This document shows, one piece after another, positions 19,758 to 64,000 of a DNA stretch of 64,000 nucleotides (positions are counted from its first letter, which is position 1; each line of letters opens with the position of its first letter). The translations under genes and the position numbers were made by a program. The stretch spans positions 61,740 to 125,739 of the forward strand of contig NIVC01001742.1 of NCBI GenBank assembly GCA_002269645.1, in the 5' to 3' direction. The notes beneath the pieces were generated by a model. It was not told the DNA's origin and did no database searches. It saw only the letters and a program-made list of their open reading frames with translations. This stretch comes from Macrostomum lignano (taxonomy: Eukaryota).

Positions 19758-20860
19758 GATTGATAATTGAGAAACAGGGATTGATAATTGAGAAACAGGG
19801 ATTGATAATTGAGAAACAGGGATTGATAATTGAGAAACAGGGATTGATAATTGAGAAACAGGGATTGATAATTGAGAAACAGGGATTGATAATTGAGAAA
19901 CAGGGATTGATAATTGAGAAACAGGGATTGATAATTGAGAAACAGGGATTGATAATTGAGAAACAGGGATTGATAATTGAGAAACAGGGATTGATAATTG
20001 AGAAACAGGGATTGATAATTGAGAAACAGGGATTGATAATTGATAAACAGGGATTGATAATTGAGAAACAGGGATTGATAATTGAGAAACAGGGATTGAT
20101 AATTGAGAAACAGGGATTGATAATTGAGAAACAGGGATTGATAATTGAGAAACAGGGATTGATAATTGAGAAACAGGGATTGATAATTGATAAACAGGGA
20201 TTGATAATTGAGAAACAGGGATTGATAATTGAGAAACAGGGATTGATAATTGAGAAACAGGGATTGATAATTGAGAAACAGGGATTGATAATTGAGAAAC
20301 AGGGATTGATAATTGAGAAACAGGGATTGATAATTGAGAAACAGGGATTGATAATTGAGAAACAGGGATTGATAATTGAGAAACAGGGATTGATAATTGA
20401 GAAACAGGGATTGATAATTGAGAAACAGGGATTGATAATTGAGAAACAGGCATTGATAATTGAGAAACAGGGATTGATAATTGAGAAACAGGGATTGATA
20501 ATTGAGAAACAGGCATTGATAATTGAGAAACAGGGATTGATAATTGAGAAACAGGGATTGATAATTGAGAAACAGGGATTGATAATTGAGAAACAGGGAT
20601 TGATAATTGAGAAACAGGGATTGATAATTGAGAAACAGGGATTGATAATTGAGAAACAGGGATTGATAATTGAGAAACAGGCATTGATAATTGAGAAACA
20701 GGGATTGATAATTGAGAAACAGGGATTGATAATTAAGAAACAGGGATTGATAATTGAGAAACAGGGATTGATAATTGAGAAACAGGGATTGATAATTGAG
20801 AAACAGGGATTGATAATTGAGAAACAGGCATTGATAATTGAGAAACAGGGATTGATAATT
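19758..20860. repeat. 21-bp highly homogeneous minisatellite (gattgataattgagaaacagg)
   Basis: About 52 near-identical copies; source of the LIIEKQG ORF. Confidence 0.96.
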
Positions 20861-21124
20861 GTTTCAGATGTTTGAGAAGCAGGACAATTGAGAAATTATT
20901 GAATAGAGGTGCCGTTACAATTGCAATTAATGCCAAAATTTAAAAGGCTGAAAATGTTGATATTCTGAACAGAGAGTTGCTAAAATTACAAGCACGAGTG
21001 ACAGATAAAATCAAAAACTTTGATTAAACTTAGAATAAGCTGTACCATAAGCTTCCAGTGACTTGTACACGTGCGAAGCAGTCAGACAAGACAACAACTC
21101 AATCGATGCAGTCCTAGAAGGAAA

Positions 21125-22405
21125 TCACAACTGACTGTCGGCAATGGAGTACCTGTTGCCCAGGCCTCCGCCGGTGCCACCGCCCCCGATTCGACACCCC
21201 TGGGTAAACGGATCGCCGCCGTTTAGGCCGGCGTCTCCAGCTCGACGCCTGGCGAACGAGCGTCGGCACAGCCGGTCCAGCCGCAGCAGCTTGTTGAAAG
21301 CGTGCCGGAATTCCCGATTGAAAAAGGCGTAAATAAGCGGATTCAGCGAGGAGTTGAAGTAGCCAATCCAGAATAGAATTTCGACCAGAACCTCCGGGTA
21401 GGGGCAGGAGCGGCACACGGCCTGGGTGATGGTGTACCAGCTGAAGAAGGGCACCCAGCAGGCGATGAAGCAGCCCATGATGATGCCGAGAGTCTTAGCG
21501 GCTTTGTGCTCGCGTTTCATTCGACGACGGTCTCGATGGTTGCTAGGAGTGGATTGCTCGGAGCGCAGTTGCTGCTGCAGTTGCTGCTGCTGACCGCTTG
21601 ATGATGGGACGCAGCTGTTTGCTTCGAGCAGAGGCTTAGCAGAGCAGCCAGTCTCCGCGCTCTGCACCAGCTTCTGCATCTTGTAGATCTCCTTCTCCTG
21701 CTTGTGCGCCTCGCCGTAGATTCTAGCGTAGACGAAGGTCATTGTGACGCAGGGGATCCAGAAGGACACGGTAGAAGAGATCAGGGCGTAGACTCGGTTG
21801 ACTTCAAACACGCACAGGGTCGGGTTTAGCCTGGACTGGCGCAGACTCTCCGAGGTTGTGTAAATTCCCGTGTGTACAGGTATGTAGGAGATTAACAACG
21901 AGGCTAACCAGCTGAAGCAGATCATCAGACTGACTCGGCGCCGGGACATTCGACGTTCGTACTCGAACGGATCCATGATGGCGATGTAGCGATCGGTGCC
22001 GATGCAGCACAAGTGCAAGGTGGACGCCGTGCTGAAGAAAACGTCATTAGAATTAAAAACGTTGCACAGAACTCGGCCCAGAGGCCAGCGACCGCCGACG
22101 ATCTGCATGGCGTTGAACGGCATTACTAGCAGGGCTACGAGAAAGTCGGCGCAAGCCAGCGAAACGATGAAAGCGTTTGTCACTACAATGCGCAGCCGAC
22201 GGAACTTCAGAACGGCAACAATGACCAGCGCATTGCCGGCCAGAGCTAGCACTATTATTATGGTCATCAAGGTTGCCTTGACAACCGAAAGAGCAACGGA
22301 GTTTTCGACGGAATCGGAGTCGTCAGAGACGTTACTGGCACTACAGCTAGAGTTGTAGGCCCAAGAAGCGCTGCCTTTCAAATAATCGGAGCAGTTGGTC
22401 GGCAT
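21125..22405 (-). CDS. Class A aminergic GPCR, beta-adrenergic-like octopamine receptor (OctbetaR-like), intronless, 426 aa
   Basis: 7 TMs; TM1 GN, TM2 SLACAD, TM3 NDVFFSTAS..HLCCI.DRY with D3.32, TM5 SSTVSFWIP, TM6 REHKAAKTLGIIMG..CWVPFF, TM7 NSSLNPLIY; N-terminal sequons. Confidence 0.9.
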   Translation of the reverse strand: MPTNCSDYLKGSASWAYNSSCSASNVSDDSDSVENSVALSVVKATLMTIIIVLALAGNALVIVAVLKFRRLRIVVTNAFIVSLACADFLVALLVMPFNAMQIVGGRWPLGRVLCNVFNSNDVFFSTASTLHLCCIGTDRYIAIMDPFEYERRMSRRRVSLMICFSWLASLLISYIPVHTGIYTTSESLRQSRLNPTLCVFEVNRVYALISSTVSFWIPCVTMTFVYARIYGEAHKQEKEIYKMQKLVQSAETGCSAKPLLEANSCVPSSSGQQQQLQQQLRSEQSTPSNHRDRRRMKREHKAAKTLGIIMGCFIACWVPFFSWYTITQAVCRSCPYPEVLVEILFWIGYFNSSLNPLIYAFFNREFRHAFNKLLRLDRLCRRSFARRRAGDAGLNGGDPFTQGCRIGGGGTGGGLGNRYSIADSQL

Positions 22406-31433: not shown

Positions 31434-31814
31434 AACCTACAAGGAGATTGAGGCATCCCTAGGCATCAATTTGCCGCAATTGCCAAAATCCTTCATGACC
31501 ACATCAGCTTGTGCAAGCTGACCAGTCATTAGGTGCCTATCTGCTAGGGCATGAAATAGGCCAAGGTCAATTGGTACCATCAGATGCTACAAAAATATAG
31601 CAATAGAGCATCAAAGGCAGTTACCAACATTGTGACATCTGACAAGACTTGGGTATATTGCTACAAGCCAAAGTGTAAATGCCAGTCACAGGTGTGGACA
31701 TTTCTAAACAAGGTGCAACCAACAAAGGTTGTGCAAGGCAGGAGTATTAGCAAGCAAATGGTTGCACCTTTTTTCTGTTGCTCAGGTCATATGGCAATTG
31801 TGCAGCTGCTAAAC

Positions 31815-34409
31815 CATGGGTCCCCAACCTGCGGCCCGCGGGCCGCATGCGGCCCGCGAGCCCTTTTTGTGCGGCCCGCGGCACCTTCCAGTAGTTTGCA
31901 TTACATGCGGCCCGCCGAGTCTATCACTGGATTTCACTGCGGCCCCCGAAAATGTTAAAGTTTTCCTAGCTGTGGGGGTTGGGGGTAAGGGCTCTACTGC
32001 CTCTCTCTCTCTCATGAAAGCTAGTTTAGTTCAGTCGATATTTTCTCTCCCCCACAGTGCGCTGATTCAACCTCCGCTGATTCAACCCCTCACCGCTTCA
32101 AACCTCTCTCTCCATATCTGGCTACGCATGCGTGGGGGAAGGGGGAGTGACGCACAACACAACCCCCCACTTTCCCTCCCCCCGCACTAGTATATTCTCG
32201 CTAGCAGTTTATTGGCTGCTTCTTTCTCACTGTACAATGAAACGGCCTGACGGGTCTGCGGCCCAAAGCCTCGCTGGGGTGGCATTTCGTCTCTAGTCCA
32301 GCCCATAGTTCTTGTAACCAATAGAAACTTATCGATTTTTCTTCTACACCCTTTTTCATGGGTGTACATTGTTTATTGGCCCTTAAATGCCAGTAGAGTT
32401 CCTTAAAATGGTGGACCAGTAGCAAGGAGTAACTCTATAACTCAGTAACTCTATAGTTCCAGATGGCACACGCTGCAAAAAAGAGGAAGATCGCGGAGGA
32501 GAAGCGCTCCTTTAATGCCGACTGGTGTCAGTTCTTTTTCGTGGAGCGCAAGGGGAAGCCGCTGTGTGTCATCTGCCAGGAGACGACCGCCGTATGCAAG
32601 GAGTTCAATGTGAAGCGGCACTTCACCACGAACCATGCCAAGTTTGTGGACATGCCGGAGGACAAGCGCAAGACTGAGTTCACTCGCTTGGCAGCCAACT
32701 TGGACCGGCAGAATGCCCTCTTTAAAAAGCCTGTGAATCTGGCTCAATCTGCCGCAATCCGCAACACGCGCGCCAGCTACCGAGTTGCCCACCTGGTAGC
32801 GACCCAGCTAAAGCCCTTCACCGACGGGGCATTTGTAAAGGAGTGCATGATGGCCGCTGTAGAGGAAGTCTGCCCAGAAAAAAAGGATCTCTTCACCAAC
32901 ATCAGCCTCTCTGCTTCCACCATCACTCGCCGCATTGAAGAGATGGCAATCGACATTCGTTCAACGCTTAAGCAGCGCTGCCACAGTGCACGTTTCTTCT
33001 CCATTGCCCTCGACGAGTCTACCGACGTCAAGGACACAGCTCAGCTCGCCATCTTCTTTCGTGGCGTCACGGACACCTTTGACGTAGTGGAAGAATTCGT
33101 CCGGCTGATGCCGATGCAAGGAACCACCACTGGTGCCGACATCCTGCAGTGCGTGCTAAAGTTGGTGCAGGAATTCGAGCTGGATCTATCACGCCTGTGT
33201 GCCATTACCACTGACGGTGCACCTGCCATGGTTGGGCCAACCAAGGGCTTTGCTTCCCTCCTGGTAAAGCACTGCCGGGACCAGGGACATATGCAGGACA
33301 TCATGCGCATCCACTGCATCGTACACCAAGAAGTCCTCTGTGCAAAGTCGACCACCATAACGTCCGTTATGGGCGTCGTGGTGAAGGCGGTGAATTTTGT
33401 GCTAGCTCGGGCCCTGAATCACCGCCAGTTCCGGGACTTGCTGTCAGAGGCCAAAGCACAGTATGGGGACCTTCTCTATTACTGTGAGGTGCGCTGGCTC
33501 AGCCGCGGGAAGATGCTGCAAAGAGTCTTCGATCTGAGGGAGGAGCTAGCCGACTTCTTGGATTCAAAGGGAGCTGCTGTCCAGGAGTTCACTGACCCAG
33601 CGTGGGTGCAAGACCTCGCCTTCCTTGTTGACCTGACTGGGCACCTCAACACCCTGAACACCCAGCTGCAAGGCCGTGGCGTCCTTGTGCCAGACATGAT
33701 AAACAAGATCAAGGCATTCGAGACCAAGCTCAGGCTGTGGGAAGCACAGATAAAGAATCGAGAGCTCACACACTTTCCCAACCTTGCAACTTTCGAGCTG
33801 ACTAATTCAGCTGCCCAGAAGTACGCTGACGCCCTTTCGGACCTGAGGGACGAGTTCGCCAACCGCTTCTCGGAGTTGCGAGCGAATTCAATGGAGCTGA
33901 AGCTATTCAGCAGCCCTTTCGACCTGGATGCTGATGAAGTGCCTGCCAATCTGCAGATGGAGCTCATTGAGCTTCATTGTTCTGACGAGCTCAAAGCAAA
34001 GTTCGGCTGCACCTCCCCAATGGGATTTTGGAGCCAGGGCATCAAGCCTGCTGACTTTCCAGGCCTCGTCCTACACGCCACGAAGATTGCTGCCATGTTT
34101 GGTTCTACATACGCATGTGAACAGCTCTTCAGCCGAATGAAGCTGACCAAGAGCAAAACTAGAGCGCAGTTGACTGACGGCCACCTCGAAGATGCACTGC
34201 TGCTCGCTGTTTCGTCGATCAAGCCAAATGTTGAACTGCTGTCGAAGGATAAGGAGCACCAGCCATCTCATTGATTTTGTTTGACATTTGGAAATGGACA
34301 TTTTTGCTTGGTTTTGTGTATTTCATGTTTTGTGTATTAGCATGCGGCCCGCACACACCAAGCCAGTTGTCAATGCGGCCCGCCGCCCATAGAAGGTTGG
34401 GGACCCCTG
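31815..34409 (+). mobile_element. Full-length autonomous hAT transposon, Buster/SPIN/Charlie group
   Basis: 16-bp TIRs catgggtccccaacct / aggttggggacccctg; perfect 8-bp TSD tgctaaac with central TA; subterminal gcggccc motifs. Confidence 0.95.
32463..34274 (+). CDS. hAT (Buster/SPIN, GTF2IRD2-like) transposase, 603 aa, intact and intronless
   Basis: N-terminal C2H2/BED-like finger (CVIC...HFTTNH); catalytic ALDEST, TTDGA, HCIVH, EVRW, YACEQLFS. Confidence 0.95.
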   Translation: MAHAAKKRKIAEEKRSFNADWCQFFFVERKGKPLCVICQETTAVCKEFNVKRHFTTNHAKFVDMPEDKRKTEFTRLAANLDRQNALFKKPVNLAQSAAIRNTRASYRVAHLVATQLKPFTDGAFVKECMMAAVEEVCPEKKDLFTNISLSASTITRRIEEMAIDIRSTLKQRCHSARFFSIALDESTDVKDTAQLAIFFRGVTDTFDVVEEFVRLMPMQGTTTGADILQCVLKLVQEFELDLSRLCAITTDGAPAMVGPTKGFASLLVKHCRDQGHMQDIMRIHCIVHQEVLCAKSTTITSVMGVVVKAVNFVLARALNHRQFRDLLSEAKAQYGDLLYYCEVRWLSRGKMLQRVFDLREELADFLDSKGAAVQEFTDPAWVQDLAFLVDLTGHLNTLNTQLQGRGVLVPDMINKIKAFETKLRLWEAQIKNRELTHFPNLATFELTNSAAQKYADALSDLRDEFANRFSELRANSMELKLFSSPFDLDADEVPANLQMELIELHCSDELKAKFGCTSPMGFWSQGIKPADFPGLVLHATKIAAMFGSTYACEQLFSRMKLTKSKTRAQLTDGHLEDALLLAVSSIKPNVELLSKDKEHQPSH

Positions 34410-35025
34410 TGCTAAACTAACGCATAGTGACTATGGTCTAGTATACTACATGTAGTGTCTGTTTGGTATAGGTCATTCATAGCCTAAGCAAAATACATCC
34501 AAAGTTAGATGCCTAAGGCTTGACACTACATTAAGACAATATGGAGCTCTTATATAGCTCAGGCAACATGGCAGTTTCTGCAGACTCTGGGACTATAGCT
34601 GACTAGTCACTTGCCATACTTGCCTAATCTAGCATTATGTGACTTTTGACTATAGAAGAAGCTATTGATATATTCGAAAAGATTGCTCCAAGTGGAACCA
34701 CTGCTTTGTCATTGGGTTTAAAAGGATGAGGTGCTACATCTAAGCTAGTGTAAAATACTTTAAGAAGCTATGAAAATTTTAGCTTCATAGCTGCTTCTGT
34801 TCAGATATAGCTAAAAACTTTTGTAGTGCCTTTTGTACCTATACATAGTTGTCTACAAACTAATCATGACAATATTTTGCTGCTGAAAGTACATGGCTAG
34901 TTGGCCTAAACATACAATCATATATTAATATTGCTTATTTGCAGAGGTAGCATTTTATGATTATAAAATTGTTAGCAATAATAAGGAGTTACAACATTGT
35001 TAACTAGTTCTAGATCATACATATG

Positions 35026-36719: not shown

Positions 36720-37400
36720 AAGCAATGAAATATAAACTTACAGTTAAATATGCATCATTGCGGCATGTATGCAAGAAAAAAAGATTTTTCTTGATAGGTA
36801 TTATAGAAGCTGAGAAAAATGCAATTTTCCAATCCTTATGGGAATTCTAATGTGTTACCTGGCTTCCAAAGTAAGCGCTTACTGTAAGCTTATTAAGCAA
36901 CCAGGTATCATGAAACTTCACTTAAATGTGTATCATTGCGGCATGTATGCAGGAAAAAAGAATTCTTGATAGGTATTGTAGAAGCTAAGAAAAATGTGAT
37001 TTTCCAATCTTTATGGGAATTCTAATGTGTTACCCGGCTTCCAAAGTAAGCGCTTACTATAAGCTTATTAAGCAACTAGGTATCATGAAACTTCACTTAA
37101 ATGTGTATCATTGCAGCATGTATGCAGGAAAAAAAGAATTTCTCAAATTGCTTCAGTAGAAGCCAAGTAAAATGCAATTTTCCAATCCTTATGGGAATTC
37201 CAATGTGTTACCTGGCTTCCAAATCAGATGCTTACTGTATGCATATTAATCAATGAAGAACAATGAAATTACACTTAAATATGTATAATTACAGCATATA
37301 TTCAGAAAAAAAGAATTTCTCAAGTCGTTTCAGTAGAAGCTGAGTAAAATGCAATTTTCTCATCCTTACAGAAATTGGTATGCTTAAAAAGAAACTTATG
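36720..37400. repeat. ~178-bp diverged tandem repeat, about 3.7 copies
   Basis: Anchor tg(c/t)atcattgc(g/a)gcatgtatgca at ~36750, 36929 and 37105, degenerate at ~37282. Confidence 0.85.
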
Positions 37401-37830: not shown

Positions 37831-38354
37831 TCTCAAAAGAATGTTAAATATGTAGTAAAATTTTAGAAATTAATAGTAAAGAATACTTAAAGTTAATGAA
37901 TACATTATTAGAGCTTTTTTTATCATTTTTATTAGTAGTTATTTTAGTTGTAATTTAATTTACCATTTTAACAAATCATCTTATTAAAGATAAGACAATA
38001 CATTATTGATTTTTGCTTTTATATATGTTTGCAATTTTTTTATAGCTTTATAGCTTTCAAGTCGCCAAAAACTAAAATTTCAAAAAATTTGCCCCCGATT
38101 TTTGGATTTCGCCAGAGGGTGAGATAAGAAAAGGTTTCAGTTACAAGCAAGGTAAAGCTAGAAATACTAAAAGAATAAGATTTGTCACCAAAATTGAAAA
38201 TCAAAGCACAATATTTAAAACTGTAAAGTTTAGACAATGGTCTATGGCCAAAATGACCAGTTACTTACAGGCTACTAGACTAATGATTTTTATATTTAAT
38301 TTCAATTAGATAAAGTTGAAAAATAAAAATAAAATATATTAATAGGCTTATAAG

Positions 38355-41300
38355 TAGGCTGTCCAATGAGATTTTGAAAGTAAGAAATAATCTGCTAATC
38401 TAACAATAAAACATTATAGAGGATGTTTGTAGCATTCCAAAAAAACTTCACTCATGAAAATTGAACTAGTAATAAAAAAGTTATAACGATTTTTGTGTTT
38501 AAAAATTTGAACTTTTTAGATGACAAAAATACATTACAATCTGGTTCATTTTTTCGTTCTGGAAAGAATTTTTTGTGTTTAAATAAACATAACTTTCTTA
38601 TTTTTGGCAAGAAATTATTGGCTCTGGTGTCATTTGAAAAAAGAAATTGTTTTCATTTTTTGTGATATATTTGTCATTGTCTATTTATAGAGATATCATT
38701 GGATTTTGTAAAAGAATTCTTAAAAAATATAAAAATACAAGCTACCGGATGCATGATTTTTTTATTCAAACATGGAAAACTTAAAAAATATGGAAGATAT
38801 ACTCTCACTATTTTGTCCTTGTGTTAAGAACATGTATATTAAATATTACATAAAGTTTTTCTGAGAATTAATTATCTAGAGAAAAGATATTGTTGTTTTA
38901 TTCATTTCTATATATAATTAATTTGTACCTTTACTGCACAAATGTATATATTTGACTTTAATCTTTATTATCTCATTAAGTTCTAATATAGGGTACCTAT
39001 GCTATGTAATGTATTTTATTCTTAGTTTACTAGGGAATGATAAATATTATAAAATGTTTTTATCAATTATATTTATATTGCACAACACTAGTTTTGTTGG
39101 CAAAGGCCAATACACTTTTTCATGAACATGGATTTTCAGCCTTCTCATTCAAAGTTAAAATGGCATCATCTTCAAAAGATCGCCTTGTGGTCATTTCAAA
39201 TCAAAGGGCCATCCATTTTTTCGAAAAGGCGAGAAGTAAAAATGAAACAGGCGTTGCTATCGCAACTCGCCTGCTTCGTGCAATGGGGCTCATTTCGGTG
39301 AGCCTTAGTGACAAGTGCAAAGAGGCTCTTCTGCGAAAGGTCCGCCATTGCAAGAAGAAGGCACAAGATTTGTACAGAGATCACAAGCGCGAACTGAAGT
39401 CTGGCAAGCTTCATTCGTCTTATGATGCCTTTCTTGAAGCCAGCTTTGATGTGCCTCAAGTACTTCTCCAAGAGGTGCAGCATTTTGTAGGGAAAAGGCT
39501 GCCAGCTGAGCCCGAACAAGTGGATGATCTTGACATGGGCGACGCTGAAGCTGATCTGCTTCCTAGCACAGATCGCATTCACCAGCAGGCCTCATCCGCT
39601 ATGTCAGTTGAGGAGCAAACTGGCGTCCAGGCAGCTCTGTCGGACATCAATTCCGACCTCCAATGGCAGCTGCGTCAGAAGGAACAGCAGCTCCACGCCC
39701 TGCATTGCCGTCTTGCCAAACGACCTAGTGCCGGCTTTTATACTCGGCAGCTCCAAACTCTGCAATCGAAAGTTGATAGTTCGAAGAAGAAGGTGCAGCA
39801 GCTGCTGCAGGAGAATCTGCGTCAGCGCGAAACGATTTGCGAGCTTCGAGCCCAGGTCAGACAGCATGACCGACAAAGCGTGTCCCAGCAGAGCTTGAAG
39901 CAGAAAGTCGGTGAGCTGCAACGCGAGATTCGCGAGCTCCACAGCAGTCTGGACCAGGTGTCGATCTCTCTGGAGGGGGCGGAGAAAGGCAACTTGATTT
40001 CGACGAAGGAGAACCGCCCCAGAGGAGGACTGCAATACAGTAACCAGGTATGAGATACTTATAAGTTCAATACAATAGTCAATAGCTATAAATTTTATGT
40101 ATGCTATTCTCTATTTTCTTATCAGTATTGTTCTACTTTTGCTGCTACATGTAGTAAAACTAAAATCGAATTTCGAAATTGAACTTTAACTAGGTAATTG
40201 AAACCTGCGTAAAGCTCGTTCTCGACTGCCATGTCCCAGTCCGATATGTGTCCCCGTGCATCCAGCATGTCCTTGCGGGGTTCACATCCTTTGATTCGAA
40301 GTCAATGGAGCTGCCGTCTAAGTCGCTGATTGCTAGCTGTGCATTCAGCGTCGGAAACTGTCTGGCGAAGGCTAGTGGGATGGACAAAACCCTGGCAGTC
40401 ACACAGACAGATCAGCCACTCACGCTGATGACCGACGGCACGTCAAAGAAGGGTCGGCATTACGCTGAGTACCAGGTGAGTTGGAGATGAATGGAGACCT
40501 GCAAAATGCGTGTACATGTACATGGAATAAAATAATTTCCTCGTTTCAATAAAGCCAAGGCATCAAGTTTTCCTAAAGAGTCAGAATAAAAAAATTGGTT
40601 GCATTTTACAGATTGACCTCGGCTCAGCTGACAACCGCCATGTTGGCCTGTCTCTGCGAGAAGTGGAAGGCGGCACCGCGGAAACGTACCTTCGCGAGTT
40701 GGACACCTCTATCGATGAACTTGTAGACACCTTCTGCGCACTAACTTTGGAAGGCAGTGAAGAGGAGCGCCAGAAGATGAAGTACAACGTGATGATGCGC
40801 CTAAAATTTCTGATGACAGATCGCCACGTCGTTAACAAGAGCCTTCAGGTAAGAAATTGAAATATTTGAAGCAAATAAATATATAAATTATAAAAATTTT
40901 GATTATTTACAGAACTAGCGTACTTTTCTACCGCCACCTCACCTGCATCTACGCGTCTACGCAACTCAGGTTCTTCTGAACGACATGCACTCTCAACTGG
41001 CCGGTGAACACGGAAAGGCGCCGCCTCCTCCTGTTGTATCGCTCTTCTGCGGCATGCATGTCATTGTAAACTTGGCTGGTACCGTGGATAAGGGACTGTT
41101 CGACTATGAGAAATGTGCCACGTCTGAGCTAATCGGTTCCGCTGCAATTGGGGGCTTTCGTCCATCAAAGTCAGAGTCAGGTACTCAGCGTCTTATTCGT
41201 ACAACGTGCAAGGCTTTTCATAAGCTGGGAAACGAGCAATGCGGTGTTGCCATGCCATTCGAGTCCTTCCTGGCGTCGAAAGGTGCGCCCAGCTTCCGGA

Positions 41301-44215
41301 TGGAAGACTTTCGCGGTAATCGACTGTACGTCATTTTTCCAAATGGCGGTTATGTCTACCGGCAGAAGGATCTCCTACTGGCCTTTCTGTCGGAATACCA
41401 CTGTAGCAACCGCCTGCTTCTCGCGGTCGAAGCAGACCTCAAATCTGCAATCCTGTTGGCCGGATGCCGTGCTCTGGGCTTGCTCGACCTGTTGCTCATT
41501 CGTCCTCTCTGGTTTCTGCTTCGGGACTCCCGCGTGACCCTAATCGACATGAATGAGCGATATGAGACTGCCTGCAGTTGGCTCCAGCAAATGACATCGG
41601 CTGAGACGGTTGTCCCGACTGCAGAGCTGGAGGGCCCATTTCCGGAGCTTTCCGGTGTTGTGCTTCAGGATGATGATGCATGGGCTTCGTGGGAGTCGCT
41701 GACTTCAGACGAGGTATCTGCGGAGACTAGTCTTGTCGGTCAAGCGCTCAAGGTCAGATATTTTATGTTATTTGCTTAGTCTGGTCACACTTTAATTTAC
41801 AGTACTGTAGTGTACAATGAAGCAGATATACAATTACATGTATCTATTTGAAGTAAAATAACCCATTTTTCATACCCAGGTTCTATGCGCCCATTGTCTT
41901 GTGCTGCTTCAGCGGGAAGTTGCTGATCACCTACAAGGAGGTCGTCTGCGAGATCTGTCTGCCGAGGACACGGCAGCAGCTGCTCAGGCACCAAAAGACA
42001 ATGTAGCTGGAGAGCGGATGTTCGCTGTTTTGGACTACACGGTGCATGGCAAGCCGAACATGAGGCATTTGGCACGCGAGTCAGCTGTTCTTTTCAGCCA
42101 GAACTGCACTGCTGAGTGGCTGGAAACAAAGTCACAGCGCGAAAAACAGCTGATCATGTCGCGGGCCCGAGTCATGGCACCAACCATGGAGAAGCGCGCG
42201 CGCACTTCCGCAGAATTTGTTCGTCGCAGACGTCAGGAGCTATTGCACGACAAGATGCTGGAGAAGCAGCGCAAGCAGGAGCTACGGGCGTCCACTCTGC
42301 AAAATGCCATTGTTGGCATCGAGGCATTCGGTGGCATGTGGCGTAGTGCAGATGACGTGGACAGTCAGCTGGCAGCCTTGTCACCTGCTGAGCATGAGCA
42401 AGCATTAAAAGCTCAGCTCCGGCTCCACAAGGCAACGAGTATGTCCCTATAGCAGAAAAAAATTTATTTACGCATGGAGAATGTTAAGACTTAGGAAAAT
42501 ATTTAGATTTATTTATCAATTCTTTTTTAGAGATTGTCCTACCAAAGGACAAAGTCCACTTGCTGAATTTTTCAGCAGGTGGTGTGTGCTTTTCAACTGC
42601 ACAGCTCCGTGAAAATTTGTGCGAGGTGCTGGGCATTCTGGCACAGACCCCCCAGCAGAACGAGGATGGTCAGCGCACAGCTTCAGTTGCCATGGACTTG
42701 CTGGCCATCCGTGAGGAGCGGGTCAGCACAGTCATCCAAGCCATCTTGGCAAAGGGTGCTAGACAACCTGCTGCTCCCAGGCCAGGCACTGATGCTGACA
42801 GTGGACGATTAGGTCGTGGACGAGGTCGTGGGATGCACAGAGGCGCATCCAATGGTCGCGGACGCAGCCAAAGTTTGTCGCGGTCACGAGGCAGATGTAT
42901 GCATCGTGGGAGTCAATCTGCTAGGCCATCAGCATCAGCCAATTTTGACCACCTCCTCCTAGCTGGCATGCCACGCCTTTGCGATGATCAGCAAATTGAA
43001 ATGCGGTTTCTGTATGTCGATGAAGATGATAAGGAAGAGGAGTATGAAGAGTGGAATTCAGGGCGCATTATTGAGCAGCTTCCTACACTTGGCATCTGCC
43101 ACGACGTGTTCGATTTGCTGTTCTTGGTAGAGTTCAATGACTTCGAAGGGGAGGAATTCGAATACGACTTGTATCGTGACTGGATTGGTGGAGACCTGCG
43201 CCTCCTGTGGAAGTTTATTTAGTGACTTAGTGTCTTGTTTACATTTTCATACAATGTACATGCATCTATGCATATACTATCATTGACAATAATGATTGCA
43301 TTTGCCTTTGGTCAATGGTTAAAAAGAAATGGAAGTAAATTTACTTCTATATTAGGCAGATTGGAAAGAGAAGATGAAGAAATCAACATTTTTTCGAAAA
43401 CAGCATATTTATAAGTATATGTATGCATTTCTACGCAAAAAAATATTTTTTCTACTAAGTAATATATAAGTAGTATGTGCATATTTAGGATCAAAGCATG
43501 AAATCCAGCTTGCGGTATGCATGGTAATGGCTATGAGTAGCTCAAAAAGTTCACCCCCTTATAATTAATTCATTTTCAGCAAAAAAACTTCTGCCGAATA
43601 TAAATTAGAATAGTAAGAAGCAATATCTGCTTTTCAATGGAGATTTACATGTATTTTGATGGTCTACAAAATATACAATAACTATGTTGCGGGAAAAGCA
43701 ACTTACAAAATTCTTTCTGCATGTAATTACTGGTATGCATATCTTTCTAAGAAAAAAGTCAAATTGCTTGCCGATGTGAAGGAAACCTGATTATTTTTGT
43801 ATCAAATTCTTTCAATTGCGATACAGGTGTACAGGAAAAACTTTTTTTCCTTGAAATATTCTAAAAATATAAATTAGAATGTTTACTTTCATACTTATAC
43901 TATCCTTTTTGTTAAAAACGGGTTTTTAAATCTTTAAATTTAGATTTTGTGAAAGCAGTTTTTTCATAAAAAATCAACCAAAAAGGAAAAAACACGAAAA
44001 GTATATTATTTTCAGTTAACAAATAATCACACAAGGATTAATAATTTTACTTGGGGTTTGGCCAGATTAAAGAGTTTTTTTTCTTCTTTTCAGTGTATAT
44101 TTCAGCAGTTCTGTACACACAATACTTTATCCAAAATTTGAAATCAAAGTTGACACTATTTTGTAACTTTTTACGATTTTGTTGACAAACTTTTGTTATC
44201 ACATTGGACAGCTTA
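38355..44215 (+). mobile_element. Full-length 5.86-kb hAT-related (hATm/hATw-like) DNA transposon
   Basis: TIRs taggctgtccaatgagat vs reverse complement taagctgtccaatgtgat (16/18); 7-bp TSD ttataag (38348-38354 / 44216-44222); encloses a spliced transposase. Confidence 0.85.
39160..43222 (+). CDS. Spliced DDE transposase, ~1146 aa, with C-terminal Spindlin-like Tudor domain. Predicted exons 39160-40047, 40194-40475, 40612-40848, 40970-41752, 41880-42438, 42531-43222
   Basis: Five GT-AG introns with compatible phases and no stop codons; motifs LMTDGTS (D), LMTDRH (D), FCGMH (CxxH), GNRL, NVAGERMF (E); N-terminal coiled coil; no BED finger seen. Confidence 0.82.
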
Positions 44216-44606
44216 TTATAAGTTAATTTTTCATAGGCCTTATATTATATAGTATTATATATAAAGAAAAAACTAAATTCAAAAAAAGTTAATAAAAAAG
44301 ATTACTTTATATCCATGGCTCAACTCATTTCTCCTTTATTTATTATAGGGCCTAAATTTTAAAGTTCAATTATAATGTCTTATTTATTGTTATACAAAGC
44401 CTAAGGCTTATTTAGATCTAGAACTATATATTTAGTTTAGAATGAGTTTAGCTCAACAAATAGGCTTAGACTAGGCCCTATGTAAATATAGGCCTTTGAA
44501 CCTTAAACTTATTTATAAATTGTATGTGTCTACATTATTACAAGTTTACTAAGACCATGATGGTATATGCTACCAAAAAGCTTACAAAAAAAATAAAACA
44601 ACTTAC

Positions 44607-50475: not shown

Positions 50476-51665
50476 AAAAAACGACTCATTTTTTAAATCT
50501 AAAATTAGTTTGTATGATGAATTTCTGTATTCCTCTCGCTAGTATTTCTAGCCTTGCTTATATATTTGCTGACTGTTTTTTGAAAATATCTATTTTGATG
50601 AAATTTAGCTGTCAACTTTTTACCTTTTAACAGAATTTTTTTCTTTTTTTCATTATCATAACTCAACGATATTTGAAGCATGAAAATATAAAACTCATCT
50701 TGAAGAGAATTTTTCCATCCAAAGTAACTTTGAGCTTCACTATTCAATATTTTTGCAATGGCGCAATGGCTACTAGATATTGTTGTCATTCAAAATCTGC
50801 AGTCTTTGGTTACTGGATTTATACTTATTGTCTATCACTCTGGCGAAGTTGGCCCTGACTTGCAATTCTCCAGTCTAAGTTTCTGTATCATCAGCAGTTC
50901 AATCTGCTATTTCTAGGTTAACAGCCACATTAACACTTCCTTTCTGCAAAATTTGGCTGATTATTTATTCTCGGTGTAACCTAGAATAGATGCACGAATT
51001 ATCTCAACCTTAATTATTAAAATTTCAGTTTGTAATAAGAATTTAAAGTCCAATTAACAAACACTGTTAATGAATAGTAGACAAAAAAGTAGACAACAAT
51101 TGGCCAGTTTTTCGGGCATAACTACGAGCTACAAACTATATTAGTAACCGAAATCCTGACATTTTTACCACTAACTGTTAAATAGCAACCAGCAACTTTT
51201 TTGTTTGCTCATCTTAATTTACAGTGTATTGTAGGCTAGACGCTAATTTCATCTAGTGAACTACAAATTCCAATTCGAAATGCTAAACTACATTTTTTCA
51301 TCTAGACTACTATACTGGTTTCCTATAAAAAATGTTTTAGCAGGACGGGAAGCTATCTCATCTTCTAGGCTTCAGCATTCCAAATGAACCAATTGTTTGT
51401 TTCGTCTGAGGTGGCACTCAAAAGTGTCTTTTCTCAACTGAATTTATCCTTAGCAAAAACCCATTTAGCGCTATACAAAATGTTCAATTTTGGCTAAATT
51501 TGTGCAGACAATAAAACTATAACCGCCAATTTTGAGTCCACCTCAAACAAAACAGATACTTACACATACTTCATTTTGTATCATTTGTTTCACACAAGTA
51601 TTTGCGTTACTAATAAACTAACCACCCTACCTAAATTGCATGCATGCCAAGTCAGTCTACTAAGC

Positions 51666-52331
51666 ATGGCCTGCTGCCAACCCGGAACCTGCTGCCAGTG
51701 CTCCATACTCTTGATCCTGTTCACCGGAATTTTTGTCACAGTCGCTGTTTTTGCCAAGTTTGCTGGTTTGTCCCACGTTGGCCTGGCTGTTCTACTTGGC
51801 GTCTACTTTGGCTTTCAGACACTTGTCGCATTTCTTCTGACCATGTTTGATAAATGCCAGGCAGAATCGGATGGTTGGCGTGTCACTGAACTGCTCTTGT
51901 ATCTGTGCGCCTTTTACTGCGGCTTCATTGGCGTCACCGTAGCTATGATAATCTGCTGGCACAAGGTTTGCAAGCGCGAATTTGTCTTTCCCTTGTTAAC
52001 TTTTGTGCCGATCAATGCTGCTTGGCTACTGATTGCTTTCTTAGTAGTTCCTATCAGTCTTCCCAGCTCTCTGTTCGTGACCAATGCTACAAATGCTATC
52101 AATGCTACTGCTCTCCTTGACAATGCTAAAAATGCTGTTCATCATATCAATGCTACTGCTCTCTTTGACAATGCTACAAATGCTATCAATGCTACTGCTC
52201 TCCTTGACAATGCTACAAATTCTATCAATGCTACTGCTCTCCTTGACAATGCTACAAATGCTGTTCATCATATCAATGCTACTGGTGTCCTTGGCAGCCT
52301 AGTTGCTCACATTTTCCCCACCGCCGGATAG
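51666..52331 (+). CDS. DUF1294-like membrane protein, paralog 2 (221 aa, NAT-repeat tail)
   Basis: DKCQAESDGWRVTE..LYLCAFYCGFIG..AM..CWHK; paralogous to 55130 and 57202; conserved ctactaagcATGGCC start context. Confidence 0.82.
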   Translation: MACCQPGTCCQCSILLILFTGIFVTVAVFAKFAGLSHVGLAVLLGVYFGFQTLVAFLLTMFDKCQAESDGWRVTELLLYLCAFYCGFIGVTVAMIICWHKVCKREFVFPLLTFVPINAAWLLIAFLVVPISLPSSLFVTNATNAINATALLDNAKNAVHHINATALFDNATNAINATALLDNATNSINATALLDNATNAVHHINATGVLGSLVAHIFPTAG

Positions 52332-52792: not shown

Positions 52793-53580
52793 GCTAGCAA
52801 TCTAGTGCCCCCTTCCGGGCGCCCAATAAGCAAGGAACAAAAATTATTCATGCAAATCCATTAAGAAGCATGAATCAATTCCTTCTTCAGTTTTATAAAT
52901 CACCTTATTCGAGTAAAATTGTCACGGAGAATGATATTTGCTATGAATATCTTTTTTTCTTAAAGTAACAAAGATAACAGGCATTCTCCCTAGCAAGCAT
53001 CCTCCAGATAGCAAGCATCCCCCCAAATACAATTGCAAGCATCCCCACAAGTAGCAAGCATCCCCCCCCCCCCAAATACAATAGCGAGCATCCCCCCAGA
53101 TAGCAAGCACCCCCCAAAAACAATAGCGAGCATCCCCCAGATAGCAAGCACCCCCCAAAAACAATAGCGAGCATCCCCCAGATAGCAAGCACCCCCCAAA
53201 AACAATAGCGAGCATCCCCCAGATAGCAAGCACCCCCCAGAAACAATAGCGAGCATCCCCCAGATAGCAAGCATCCCCCCCAATACAATAGCAAGCACCC
53301 CTCAATACAATAGCAAGCACCCCCAAATACAATAGCAAGCATCCCCCCAATACAATAGCAAGTATCCCCCAAATACAATAGCAAGCATCCCCCCAATACA
53401 ATAGCAAGCACCCCCCAAATACAATAGCGAACATCCCCCAGATAGCAAGCATCCCCGAAATACAATAGCAAGCATCCCCCAAATACAATAGCAAGCATCC
53501 CCCAAATACAATAGCAAGCATCCCCCCAGATAGCAAGCATCCCCCAAATACAATAGCAAGCATCCCCCCAGATAGGAAGC
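52793..53580 (-). mobile_element. Unit-specific ~790-bp insert with agcaagcatccccc minisatellite, possibly Helitron-like
   Basis: Absent at the homologous spot (~56260) of the next unit; minus-strand gcccggaagggggc hairpin followed by actag. Confidence 0.35.
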
Positions 53581-53627
53581 AAGAGTAGGTCTGTACTGAA
53601 TACAAAATACCGAAATACTCTTAATAT

Positions 53628-55129: not shown

Positions 55130-55669
55130 ATGGCCTGCTGCAAACCCGGAACCTGCTGCCAGTGCTCCATACTCTTGGCCCTGTTCACCGGAGTTTTTGT
55201 CACAGTCGCTGTTTTTGCCAAGTTCGCTGGTTTGTCCCACAATGAGCTGGCTGTTCTACTTGGCGTCTACTTTGGCTTTCAGACGCTTCTCGCATTTATC
55301 CTCACTTCCATTGATAAATGCCAGGCACAATCGGGAGGGTGGCGTGTTGCAAAAGCGGCCTTGTATCTGTGCGCATTTTACTGCGGCTTCCTTGGCGTCA
55401 TCTTAGCCATGCTAATTTGCTGGCACAAGGTTAAAAAGTGCGAATTCGTCACCTGTTTGCTAATTTTTGTGCCGATCAATGCTGCTTGGCTACTGATTGC
55501 TTTCTTAGTAGTTCCGATCGGTCTTCCTGGCTCTCTGGTCATGACCAATGCTACAAATGCTACAGATGCTATCAATGCTACTGCTCTCCTTGACAATGCT
55601 GAAAATGCTGTACATCATATCAATGCTTCTGGTGTCCTATTTGCTCACATTTTCCCCGCCGCCGGATAG
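55130..55669 (+). CDS. DUF1294-like membrane protein, paralog 3 (179 aa)
   Basis: DKCQAQSGGWRVAK..LYLCAFYCGFLG..AM..CWHKVKK. Confidence 0.85.
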   Translation: MACCKPGTCCQCSILLALFTGVFVTVAVFAKFAGLSHNELAVLLGVYFGFQTLLAFILTSIDKCQAQSGGWRVAKAALYLCAFYCGFLGVILAMLICWHKVKKCEFVTCLLIFVPINAAWLLIAFLVVPIGLPGSLVMTNATNATDAINATALLDNAENAVHHINASGVLFAHIFPAAG

Positions 55670-56715: not shown

Positions 56716-57201
56716 AGACGTACGCGCTATTCGGACATTCTTGGCCACTCACTGTGAACTGACAACCGGCCACTTTTGGTCTACTTTTAATTTACAGTGT
56801 AGCTAGTTTAAACAAGACGCTAAGTTCTTTTGGTTCCCTATTAAAATGCCGTAGTAAGATGGGAATTTCTCTGCTTTTAGCACTAAATTCCCAATACGAG
56901 CGTATCTCATTTTCCAGACTTCGTAGTTCCAAATGAAGCAAAGGTGTGTGTTCCGTTTGAGGTAGCACCCATAAATGTATCTTTCGTAATTTGTTTATAG
57001 CAAACTCAATTTAGTGCTTTATACAAAATGGTCGATTTTGGCTATAAATACATGCAGAAAATGCAACTATAAGCACAAATTCGAGTCCAACCTCAAACAA
57101 AACCAATACTTGCTTCATTTAGTATCATTTGTTACTATATAATTTCTTTACTAATAAAGTACGGCCCTACTGAAATGCATGTTCCAGTCAGTCTACTAAG
57201 C

Positions 57202-57714
57202 ATGGCCTGCTGCAAACCCGGAACCTGCTGCCAGTGCTCCATACTCGTGGTCCTGTTCACCGGAATTTTCGTCACAGTTGCTATTGTTGGCAAGTTTGCT
57301 GGTTTGTCACACAATGAGCTGGCCATTCTACTTGGTGTCTACTTTGGCTTTCAGACACTTTTCACATTTATCCTCACTTTCATTGATAAATCTCAGTCGG
57401 AATCGGGAGGTTGGCGCGTTGCAGAAGCGGCCCTGTATCTGTGCGCCTTTTACTGCGGCTTCCTCGGCATCATCTTAGCTATGATAATTTGCTGTCACAA
57501 GGTTAGAAAGGGCGAGTTTATCATCTGCTTGCTAATTTTTGTGCCGATCAATGCTGCTTGGCTACTGATTGCTTTCTTAGTAGTTCCAATCGGTCTTCCC
57601 GGCTCGCTGGTCATGACGAATGCTACAAATGCTATCAATGCTACTGCACTCATTGATAGCCTATTCGTTCACATTCTCCGTCCGGCCGGATGGAATGAGA
57701 CAACCTTGAATTGA
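57202..57714 (+). CDS. DUF1294-like membrane protein, paralog 4 (170 aa)
   Basis: DKSQSESGGWRVAE..LYLCAFYCGFLG..AM..CCHKVRK. Confidence 0.85.
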   Translation: MACCKPGTCCQCSILVVLFTGIFVTVAIVGKFAGLSHNELAILLGVYFGFQTLFTFILTFIDKSQSESGGWRVAEAALYLCAFYCGFLGIILAMIICCHKVRKGEFIICLLIFVPINAAWLLIAFLVVPIGLPGSLVMTNATNAINATALIDSLFVHILRPAGWNETTLN

Positions 57715-60194
57715 TGATGTCAGTAGGTAACTTGGGTTAGAAAGTTTTTGAGACAGTTGTACGGTGGAATCATTCGAGCAAATTTACCTATTTAAGCGGA
57801 ATTACTGTTTAACACTTCGATTTTTTTACTATTCTAATCGATTTGAAAGCAAAAAAATTTTAAATCTTCAAGTTTTTATTCTAAGTCGTTTTTCTGGTGG
57901 TAAAGTTGAATTGATTTTGGCTCATTTTAAGCGTATGGTGTATGGTGCAAGGATAATACTTTACTTGAACTTTTTGTTTTTTCTTTGAGAAAACATATAT
58001 GTATTAAAACAAGTACTCTGTTACAGAGATAAACAAAAAGTAATCTGTTAATCCTTGAATAGTAAAAATTTGAATCTGACTTTGTTTTGGTTTAATAAAA
58101 TTGATAGCTTATCTTATTGCTTCTTGGCCTAGGTACCGTTTCCATCAGGTAGTAAAATACTTCTACAGTTACTAGGCACTGAATTGCTTATCAATATAGT
58201 GTTTGAGTCTCGACTATTAGACTACCCGGTGTGTACATGCCACGATTAGAAGGGACGTTTTCATTTAAGACTGCAAATCCAAAACAGCGAGCTCTGTTGT
58301 GTAAGGCTCCCATTCGTGTTAGCGCGGTTTTTGCCTCAGTAGCTATAAGTTGTTTGTTGGCTGATAAGTTGAATATGCAGTAAATTCTGCATCGACTCGC
58401 CACTCAGATTGATTACGGTCCCAGACATTTAAAAGCTGCGTCGTTTCCGTCGCACAACATCCAATTGGTGCATTTACGTTAAGTCCATGCCAATCTGTGC
58501 GCATCGACCTCGCATTTGGCTATACCTTCCTAAAAAGTTCACAGTTTGGCACTTTGCTTACAAAAATGTTTGAGTCGACTATTAGACTAGCGTGTGTAAT
58601 GCCCACGATTAGAAGCCTTTTTTGACTGCAAAAAACAGCGAGCTCTGTTTTTTATCCTTTTAGCCCCGTTGTGGCTTTGCTGTACTTTATAGTTTCGATG
58701 TAATAAATAGCATTAAGCTGGTGGTACTAACGACTGCAAGGTATCAGGACCCACCTGGCATGTTCCAGTCGTTAGAAGTTGGCTAGATAGTTGATGGCGT
58801 TTTCTCATTGACTCGCCAGCTTCGCATAATGCCGCAACCTGACGACGAGACAACACACTTCCAAGCTTGATTGGTCCCGGCAGTTTCGTCAACAACAGTC
58901 TCTGCGGTTTTTCCAATTGCAGTTGCTTCCTGATAATAAAATGAATCTACTCGCACTGAGTTAAGCCTATTTTTTGGTCATGTCTATGGCTCAAAAATGT
59001 GTTACCTTTGGGTTCGGCGTGCGCATGGCAAGAAAAATTGCTAGTTGCTCCAAAAATGAAACGCAAGGCACTGGCGTATTGCCGCGCTGCGTTATTACCG
59101 CGCATACTTATAGCAGGAATGCTTCCCTTCTACCATGATTGTCATTTTGCTTATACATGAAACTGCTGTCAGCAGTCGAATGTGGATGTTGTCATGCATG
59201 TGTTTTGCTTTAAATGAAACAGTTATCAACCTGTTGTGAAGCTCCAACTCTTAAGCCCTCAAGTTCCTTCGTTTTGACCATAATGGGAGTGCACTCAACT
59301 TTGATGTTTTGAAAGCTTACATGTATGGTGATTTCGTGATTAAGCTGACACGAAAATGACAATACATCACTTTTGCTACCTATTTTTAGATCGTTTGACA
59401 CATCCATGTTCGTTCACGCTACTAACCAAAGAGTAGTTGCAAAAATCTAAACAAGAGTGAACTATCTAGGGTTATAGTATCTGTGCTCTCTTCTTCATCC
59501 CCGATCTAATATGTATATGCATGTTGATTTTGGACTTCGCGTTGCTAAACCTCTCTGTAATGATTTTGTATCGAAATGGGATGATTTATGACGACATCGT
59601 CTCACAACCAGTATGCACTGAGGCGATTCTGCCACTCATTCCGCTGAAGCTCGATCCTGAGAACATAAAAGCGCGTCAATACTGTACGCAGACATGCTCA
59701 CACAGGGTGTTGCCCCCTTGGTGCTGGCGCCCTTGGATACTGCAAACAAATGATTACTCGTTTTGTATGTATGAGTATTAAAGTGACACTGAAAAAACTG
59801 GAGGATCTTAATATGGTACGCTCATATTTTCTACACAGCTCTCATTTTTACCTAATCAATCCACTTCAAGCAACTAAGCAACAGGTATTCTTTTCTGTTG
59901 CCTGTTATGTACGCGGTAGTTGCATCAGATTAAAAATTAAAAGTGAAAATTTAAAATGAAACGTATTTATACAGTGAAAGAAATTTGTCGTCTCCTTCCT
60001 TGCGTCTAGTCCTCGCTTTCCTCTACTCTTCTTTTTTTCTTCTTGGTTTTCTACTAGCTATAGACTACTGAATTTGACTCTAGGTCAGTCAAACAAGGGA
60101 TATCACATCCATGGCCAAGCCAATGAATGCAGCCCTCAGCCACTCTGTCGACCAAATAAATGAATCCATGGGGGTGATACCATATACGTATTCC

Positions 60195-60420
60195 CCAGTT
60201 GGTCGCGGCCATAGACTACAGAAACGTATTTATATCAAGTTGGTCGCGGCCATAGACTAGATAAACGTATTTATATCAAGTTGGTCGCGGCCATAGACTA
60301 GAGAAACGTATTTATTCCCCAGCTGGTCGCGGCCATAGACTACAGAAACGTATTTATTCCCAGCTGGTCGCGGCCATAGACTACAGAAACGTATTTATTC
60401 ACCAGTTAGTCGCGGCCACG
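60195..60420. repeat. ~41-bp tandem repeat (agttggtcgcggccatagactacagaaacgtatttat...), 5-6 copies
   Basis: Direct inspection. Confidence 0.88.
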
Positions 60421-63456: not shown

Positions 63457-63479
63457 CTGAAAGAGACGATGGAAAGTGT

Positions 63480-63985
<506 letters not shown>

Positions 63986-64000
63986 TATCTGTCTATCTAT

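Follow-up and report, generated by a model that had tools for sequence, protein, structure and literature searches.

Transposon enzymes that carry chromatin-reading domains are the clearest natural cases of epigenetic marks steering integration, and the best known of these readers are chromodomains and PHD fingers. Chromo, PHD and TUDOR domains are fused to transposon proteins across eukaryotes, including a hAT transposase with a Chromo domain in a sponge (bioRxiv 10.1101/2021.11.30.470311), and targeting by the chromodomain has been demonstrated (Gao et al. 2008, as cited in bioRxiv 10.1101/2021.11.30.470311). The Spin/Ssty family is absent from the reader families surveyed in that preprint. 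Here, we describe a DNA transposon at 38355-44215 of a 64,000-nucleotide stretch of Macrostomum lignano contig NIVC01001742.1 (hereafter the window, meaning the whole of that stretch), the transposase of which ends in a domain that is probably a remote homologue of the Spindlin (Spin/Ssty) repeat. An initial annotation of the window had proposed a hAT-like transposase with such a domain and knew of no description of this fusion for hAT elements. The general idea of reader fusions had in fact been published, as the sponge protein illustrates. A literature search combining spindlin or Ssty with transposase found no relevant paper, and the accessible part of the supplementary files of the preprint makes no mention of Macrostomum.

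Spindlins are free-standing readers in which three tandem repeats are packed together as one globular unit. The window protein, in contrast, has one probable repeat, which follows an arginine-glycine (RG)-rich linker and is fused to a transposase. With the integrases of chromoviruses (Ty3/gypsy) it would share a small Royal-family-type module at the C terminus of the inserting enzyme, and the tethering logic that we propose is the same. The two systems differ in the type of reader and in the enzyme, which in the window is a DNA transposase and not a retroviral-type integrase; moreover, targeting has been demonstrated for the chromodomain and is for the window element a proposal only. Reader domains fused to transposon proteins are already established, and what is new here is the candidate reader of the spindlin type, in an unclassified family that is invisible to Pfam.

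Should this reading be correct, the element would bring a new class of reader, and possibly a new mark, to those already described, and its enzyme would represent a natural chromatin-guided DNA transposase with a spindlin-type reader. Because Pfam does not detect the family, it would escape domain-based surveys, and there may be further fusions of this kind. M. lignano can be made transgenic; if the element still moves in it, targeting would be directly testable, and the element is a candidate endogenous vector for transgenesis. Its superfamily placement, considered below, also matters for transposon classification. Taken as a whole, the proposal of a complete transposon with a divergent Spin/Ssty-type barrel in its transposase, by which the enzyme would be tethered to chromatin, seems to us about evenly balanced between right and wrong.

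A complete transposon with 7-bp target-site duplications

The element is 5,861 bp long (38355-44215). Its 16-bp terminal inverted repeats begin with TAGGCTGTCCA and are flanked by a perfect 7-bp target-site duplication, and the six-exon transposase gene is the sole long open reading frame (ORF) between its inverted repeats. The pair of repeats was independently present, as pair I7, in a blind repeat scan, and the window contains one copy of the element. Its ends are as follows.

38348-38354, no strand: left target-site duplication, TTATAAG; the same 7-mer abuts both inverted repeats on the outside
38355-38370, + strand: left terminal inverted repeat, TAGGCTGTCCAATGAG; 14 of 16 positions pair with 44200-44215
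44200-44215, - strand: right terminal inverted repeat, reverse complement TAAGCTGTCCAATGTG
44216-44222, no strand: right target-site duplication, TTATAAG

Four relatives of about 7.29 kb each (L001-L004) lie at different loci in M. lignano and have the same inverted repeats. Their ends are 16-bp repeats, TAGGCTGTCCAGTGAG and the reverse complement TAGACTGTCCAGTGAG, that match at 15 of 16 positions, and the left repeat of the window element, TAGGCTGTCCAATGAG, is one base different from TAGGCTGTCCAGTGAG. L001 (on NIVC01003597.1) is 99.9% identical to L002 and likewise to L003, with the identity ending exactly at the inverted repeats and with unrelated flanks and neighboring genes; L004 has the same termini and length as the other copies at a fourth locus. 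The target-site duplication is 7 bp long and perfect in all five insertions.

Window insertion: 7-bp duplication TTATAAG
L001 insertion: 7-bp duplication CCTATAA
L002 insertion: 7-bp duplication GTATAAT
L003 insertion: 7-bp duplication ATTTTAT
L004 insertion: 7-bp duplication ATTAAGG

We also considered a duplication of 8 bp and rejected it, since in L003 and L004 neither side allows an eighth matching base. The element in the window is therefore complete and autonomous, a cut-and-paste DNA transposon, and the initial annotation was right to see in its gene a mobile-element transposase. That the M. lignano copies are nearly identical while lying at unrelated loci implies recent mobility, and with 99.9% identity between the copies compared and at least one intact ORF, the element may still move. 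Inverted repeats and target-site duplications also led us to reject a reading of the gene as a host or domesticated gene.

The M. lignano copies adjoin PARG, TCP-1 and other genes or, in the case of L002, sit inside an intron of a kinase gene. In two of the four, the left end is found 2-4 kb past the annotated boundary, on the start side, of a neighboring gene on the minus strand (PARG for L001, TCP-1 for L003), which is too few to speak of promoter-proximal targeting.

The transposase gene and its last exon

The gene has six exons and five introns, all GT-AG, and encodes 1146 residues without an internal stop. Judged by its motifs, the ORF is probably that of an aspartate-aspartate-glutamate (DDE) transposase in which D377, D460 and E775 would have the catalytic roles.

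39160-40047, + strand: exon 1, residues 1-296; N-terminal region and a long predicted coiled coil (about residues 150-285)
40194-40475, + strand: exon 2, residues 297-390; AG/GT borders; candidate catalytic D377 (codon 40434-40436) in LTLMTDGTS
40612-40848, + strand: exon 3, residues 391-469; candidate catalytic D460 (codon 40819-40821) in FLMTDRHVVNK
40970-41752, + strand: exon 4, residues 470-730; CxxH motif C496/H499 (41048-41059) and the greater part of the long insert that separates the second D from the E
41880-42438, + strand: exon 5, residues 731-917 (last codon split); candidate catalytic E775 (codon 42012-42014) in NVAGERMF
42531-43222, + strand: exon 6, residues 917-1146 and stop; helical segment, RG-rich linker and C-terminal domain; acceptor ttcttttttag
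42803-42910, + strand: RG/RGG-rich linker, GRLGRGRGRGMHRGASNGRGRSQSLSRSRGRCMHRG
42983-43219, + strand: C-terminal Spin/Ssty-like (Tudor-like) domain, assigned by hhalign against Spin/Ssty repeats with shuffle controls

Exon 1 is defined by an ORF and a GT donor, its start aligns with the M. lignano start (MDRL), and its only Pfam matches are weak ones of coiled-coil type. Homologues were found solely in the flatworm M. lignano, where many gene models form several subfamilies that are 35-60% identical to the window protein, and the D, D, CxxH and E motifs (LMTD377GTS, FLMTD460RHVVNK, FC496GMH499VIVNL and NVAGE775RMF in the window protein) are kept in the aligned members of these subfamilies. 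D377 is invariant among the aligned family members, the D460 motif is invariant across all four subfamilies, including the 35%-identical P0005, and LFCGMHVIVNL is invariant in the family; E775 is conserved in the window protein, P0137 and P0003.

The in-frame translation of 42983-43207 (+ strand) is DDQQIEMRFLYVDEDDKEEEYEEWNSGRIIEQLPTLGICHDVFDLLFLVEFNDFEGEEFEYDLYRDWIGGDLRLL (75 residues, DDQQIEMRF...GDLRLL); the four residues WKFI and a stop codon (43220-43222) come next. The peptide quoted in the initial annotation is thus confirmed as the in-frame end of the 1146-residue gene. It lies in the last exon, which is joined to exon 5 through the 42438/42531 junction, the sole junction that preserves the frame, with a phase-1 donor (GTATGT at 42439) directly after exon 5 and a good pyrimidine tract before the acceptor.

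An intact homologue, PAA87338.1 (P0137, 1158 residues), shares 57% identity with the window protein across 1150 residues, and its last intron is at the equivalent codon (residue 925, compared with 916/917 in the window protein). Both PAA87338.1 and PAA94379.1 are intact and run in frame through the RG repeats into ...RIEMLFAYVDED...EEWNAGYIIRQVP...FLVEFDDFPGKPVPYDLYRDYIRGDLRIL. The GenBank annotation of the M. lignano assembly was derived from genome-guided assemblies of RNA sequencing (RNA-seq) data, which had been cleared of transcripts that overlapped annotated repeats (PMC5730564). Transcripts therefore probably support the exon 5/6 junction of the M. lignano gene model, in agreement with the joining of the last exon to the catalytic exons that had been assumed at the outset, and because repeat-overlapping transcripts had been removed, the family was evidently not recognized as a repeat. 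The degree of identity to P0137 varies along the window protein.

Catalytic core: 70%
C-terminal domain: 60%, no gaps
Helical segment: 52%
N terminus: 38-45%
Linker: 34%

With gapless identity of 60% in the domain compared with 34% in the adjoining linker, the tail is, on the pattern of conservation, a constrained and probably folded module. RG runs nevertheless occur at the equivalent place in P0137 and P0005, in a linker that apart from these runs shares only 34% identity.

It might be supposed that the peptide is not part of the transposase at all, being the exon of a neighboring host gene, an artifact of the gene model or part of a domesticated host gene. Several M. lignano models of the family are indeed chimeric or frameshifted, with an out-of-frame tail in P0001 and fusions in P0003 and P0133. 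However, in the window, and likewise in those M. lignano copies that were examined, the C-terminal exon lies within the repeat-bounded element. It reads in frame in the two intact homologues, the intron position is conserved in PAA87338.1, the domain is conserved at 60%, and the element with its target-site duplications is found at several unrelated loci. This explanation is largely refuted, and we regard it as very improbable.

Of the four M. lignano copies, L003 and L004 keep the frame, whereas L001 and L002 have a one-base frame shift between ...SKASGPPAAS and the RG-rich linker (13900-14200 of L001). The annotated protein of L001 (P0001) leaves the frame just before the linker, and the domain is still encoded, 58% identical to that of the window. 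Either the two copies share a real inactivating mutation, or the PacBio assembly contains an indel error at this point.

Similarity of the C-terminal domain to the Spindlin repeat

The domain was compared with an alignment of Spin/Ssty repeats from 28 non-redundant spindlins, three repeats each, the query being an alignment of four family members. The SPIN1 sequence used matches PDB 7e9m_A at 262 of 262 residues, and the sequence given in the initial annotation was accordingly correct, as were the cage residues F141, W151, Y170 and Y177 and the pocket residue D184 (PMC8213585). The family alignment matched the Spin/Ssty repeats in hhalign with a score of 32.1, a probability of 83% and a P value of 8.9e-6 over 48 columns. 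Against the whole spindlin the match fell on Tudor 2, with GKAVEHMF pairing with DQQIEMRF, and YDLYRDWIGGDLRLL was also paired with a stretch of spindlin; an alignment to this domain that had been made by eye is thereby reproduced by profile-profile comparison. The matches are colinear over all four strands and the terminal motif Y-x-L-x-x-D-x-x-x-G-D-L-R-[IL].

The controls largely support this result. None of 200 column shuffles reached the real score (mean 10.5, standard deviation 2.4, maximum 19.8), nor did any of 100 six-column block shuffles, and the reversed alignment scored 14.6. With a custom hidden Markov model (HMM) of the Spin repeat, the window domain scored 7.7 bits and the M. 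lignano domain 15.8 bits, each more than all 1000 composition-matched shuffles; the third member, the fragment P0006, was equalled or exceeded by 28 of 1000.

Compared with Spin/Ssty (PF02513), as exemplified by SPIN1 Tudor 2, a reader of H3K4me3, the profile alignment is colinear over about 48-60 columns. Shared motifs are I-E-x-x-F in strand 1, E-W-x-G-x-[IV] in strand 2, [FY]-x-[IV]-x-[FY] in strand 3 and Y-x-L-x-x-D-[YW]-x-x-G-D-L-R-[IL] in strand 4 and the tail. The window domain is aromatic at the positions of F141, W151, Y170 and Y179 and has D at that of D184; it differs by an acidic insert, DEDDKEEEY, between strands 1 and 2 and by a 7-residue insert before strand 3. On these grounds, the C-terminal domain is likely to be a remote homologue of the Spindlin repeat, present as a single repeat.

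The candidate aromatic cage

In SPIN1, the cage is formed by F141, W151, Y170 and Y177, with H139, Y179 and D184 lining the pocket (PMC8213585). The corresponding positions of the window protein, all on the + strand, are as follows.

43007-43009, + strand: candidate cage residue F1076, aligned to SPIN1 F141; invariant in the family
43052-43054, + strand: candidate cage residue W1091, aligned to SPIN1 W151; invariant in the family
43133-43135, + strand: candidate cage residue F1118 (VEF), aligned to SPIN1 Y170; invariant in the family
43157-43159, + strand: candidate cage residue F1126, counterpart of SPIN1 Y177
43163-43165, + strand: candidate pocket residue Y1128, aligned to SPIN1 Y179; conserved
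43178-43180, + strand: candidate pocket residue D1133, aligned to SPIN1 D184; conserved

The W, the F of VEF and the F of xRF are invariant across the family, and a cage in the C-terminal domain is plausible from the alignment. Spindlin sequences were kept out of the AlphaFold2 alignment in order to avoid a circular test of the fold. In both low-confidence models, strands fall on the segments aligned to what we take to be the strands of SPIN1.

Possible functions of the C-terminal domain

From N to C terminus, the transposase would comprise an N-terminal region with a coiled coil, a core with D377, D460, C496-x-x-H499 and E775 in an order and spacing that appear typical of hAT-type enzymes, a helical segment, the RG-rich linker and the domain of about 75 residues. 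We propose that this domain is a divergent, single-copy Tudor-like beta-barrel of the Spin/Ssty type that may retain the aromatic positions of the methyl cage of SPIN1 Tudor 2. Such a barrel could tether the transposase or the transpososome to a methylated chromatin ligand, for example H3K4me3-like or methyl-arginine marks, the most likely class of ligand being a methylated histone tail. Tethering would then bias the site or the timing of integration, much as a chromodomain does in a chromovirus integrase. Fold, cage geometry, ligand and targeting of integration are all inferred in this scheme, as are the capture of a host reader and the steering of integration put forward in the initial annotation, for which no donor gene was found. 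In its most specific form, namely an unclassified DDE cut-and-paste lineage with a 7-bp duplication, still active in M. lignano, in which a single Spin/Ssty Tudor, possibly together with the RG linker, would read H3K4me3 or methyl-arginine marks to direct integration, the scheme is in our view rather unlikely.

A number of results weigh against a spindlin-type reader. Pfam PF02513, recommended at the outset as a check, gave no match at E<=10 for the window domain or for any of the four family members, and no spindlin was found in the PDB by phmmer or by a profile hmmsearch with the C-terminal domain; the similarity to Spin thus stands in profile-profile comparison and not in these searches. 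For the window sequence alone, the hhalign probability is 9%, and BLASTP against SPIN1 gave two short pieces with E values of 0.03 and 0.065 in a single comparison. Two of 100 ten-column block shuffles reached the real hhalign score, and it follows that much of the signal lies in two local motifs; the Spin/Ssty profile was, furthermore, built from vertebrate spindlins only. No further Spin/Ssty repeat was detected by tblastn in the window or elsewhere in the protein, which has a single repeat compared with three in spindlins. The predicted local distance difference test (pLDDT) score of AlphaFold2 was low, at 46.8 for the window domain alone and 46.7 (about 44-51 over the domain) for the intact M. 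lignano homologue modeled from a 9-row alignment that included the window exons. The cage had been described as intact: three of its positions are aligned and invariant, as seen in the alignment only, but the counterpart of Y177 varies in the family (F, V, F), being V in the M. lignano homologue, and the models have a pLDDT of about 47. Finally, the five insertions seen permit no statement on targeting.

These results invite the explanation that the likeness to Spindlin is convergent or spurious and that the module is a small beta domain specific to the family, serving in multimerization or the binding of DNA ends as in other transposases and having no part in reading chromatin. Sequence-to-profile and sequence-to-sequence searches were all negative, block shuffles at times reach the hhalign score, and there is no confident structure; a Foldseek search with the pLDDT-47 model of the homologue gave no significant match. 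An exhaustive HMMER search of 1.84 billion representatives with the domain returned one match, a fragment of the same M. lignano family that provides no bridge to the spindlins, and a word-indexed protein search with the domain returned none. Chance or convergence has, on the other hand, to account for the low P value of a match that is colinear over four strands and the terminal motif, for invariant aromatic residues at three cage positions and for the success of two of the three members against every one of the shuffles with the Spin-repeat HMM. We would give this explanation a low probability.

A different explanation accepts a Tudor-like barrel and changes its ligand, which would be methylated arginine in RG repeats and not a histone mark. 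RG repeats are standard substrates of arginine methylation, canonical Tudor domains bind RG repeats, and SPIN1 Tudor 1 reads H3R8me2a. The ligand could be the protein's own RG-rich linker, with self-association or autoinhibition of the transpososome as the outcome, or it could be a host RG protein such as PIWI or Sm, which would link the element to the PIWI-interacting RNA (piRNA) pathway or shield it from that pathway. In either case, the domain would be concerned with self-assembly or an interaction with small-RNA silencing rather than with the choice of site. An RG/RGG-rich stretch lies directly upstream of the domain and recurs in the window protein, P0137 and P0005 despite the poor conservation of the linker, and M. 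lignano is reported to have an active PIWI/piRNA system (PMC4604429). Yet the best profile alignment is to Tudor 2 of SPIN1, the methyl-lysine reader, and not to Tudor 1, and neither P0006 nor the available model of P0003 has an RG run before the remnant of the domain, both models being fragmentary. Methyl-arginine binding is a serious alternative, albeit one that we think improbable.

Relationship to hAT and P elements

The initial annotation called the transposase hAT-like, and there are similarities: the short inverted repeats of the window element start with TAG/CAG as in the hAT superfamily, and by inspection the order of D, D, CxxH, long insert and E-R-x-F is that of hAT transposases. 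A direct comparison is possible because the window also contains a canonical hAT element (31815-34409; 31807-34417 with its duplications), which has a perfect 8-bp duplication, TGCTAAAC, an inverted repeat, CAKGGGTCCCCAACCT, with ends CATGGGTCCCCAACCT and the reverse complement CAGGGGTCCCCAACCT, and an intact, intronless ORF of 603 residues (32463-34274) with clear D/D/CxxH/RW/E motifs. The Pfam matches of this ORF, DUF4371 (E 9e-5) and the BED-like 'Spin-doc zinc-finger' PF18658 (E 5e-5), are weak, and both are below the gathering score. The spacing from the second D to the C is 36 residues in the window transposase and 34 in this ORF, and that from the second D to the E is 315 and 302, respectively.

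The differences are more substantial. The duplication made by the transposon is 7 bp in all five insertions compared with 8 bp for the in-window hAT, its transposase gene is split by five introns and encodes an N-terminal coiled coil and a Tudor-like tail, and the RW tryptophan of hAT enzymes has no clear counterpart. Neither the whole protein nor its core segments nor the homologues matched the BED, DUF4371, DUF659 or hAT-dimerization families of Pfam at E<=10, and no transposase family of Pfam at all was matched by the whole protein, the C-terminal domain, the four family members or core segments. A PDB profile search with the full-length family did not find Hermes, and when the catalytic core was compared with the in-window hAT ORF by hhalign, the P value was 0.26, with no similarity in local, extended local (low -mact) or global mode and no co-alignment of the catalytic motifs. 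In a Foldseek search with the pLDDT-47 model, Hermes chains appeared at ranks 2, 4, 6 and lower, with non-significant E values of 0.03-1.7 and template modeling (TM) scores of about 0.1; we take these matches as a hint from a model and not as a result. The element would work like a hAT-type DDE transposon, yet membership of the superfamily fails two defining tests and is not supported, and the family is left unclassified.

Target-site duplications of 7-8 bp have been reported for the P superfamily. The layout of P-element transposase and THAP9, with an N-terminal DNA-binding region, a coiled coil and a split RNase-H-like core with a large insert, resembles that of the window transposase. Its inverted repeat is, however, unlike the P-element type, the Pfam families of P-element transposase and THAP9 gave no match for the window transposase, and no P-element transposase structure was among the 50 Foldseek matches listed.

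Other features of the window

PF18658, matched by the in-window hAT, is named after SPIN-DOC, a partner of Spindlin. The transposon forms an island of 43-48% GC, and about 1 kb to its left, in DNA of 30% GC, lies a satellite with a 175-178-bp unit and 3.6 copies (36734-37368).

A single-exon ORF of 426 residues on the minus strand (21125-22405) encodes a rhodopsin-family G protein-coupled receptor (Pfam 7tm_1, E 3.7e-65) and lies between minisatellite arrays. On the plus strand, there are three ORFs at 51576-52331 (251 residues), 55130-55669 (179 residues) and 57175-57714 (179 residues), the first two of which match Pfam DUF1294 (E 1e-13 to 1e-14). This looks like a local duplication, in which the third ORF is included solely for its length, equal to that of the second.

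Minisatellites with a period of 16-41 bp pack positions 1-29000 and occur again at 52991-53581, 60189-60418 and 63479-64000; examples are an array of 53 copies with a period of 36 bp at 12712-14617 and one of 52 copies with a period of 21 bp (98% matches) at 19758-20861. These arrays give rise to long spurious ORFs in several frames and to spurious Pfam matches (FtsL, DUF3659), and the strong strand composition skews of the window are probably due to them.

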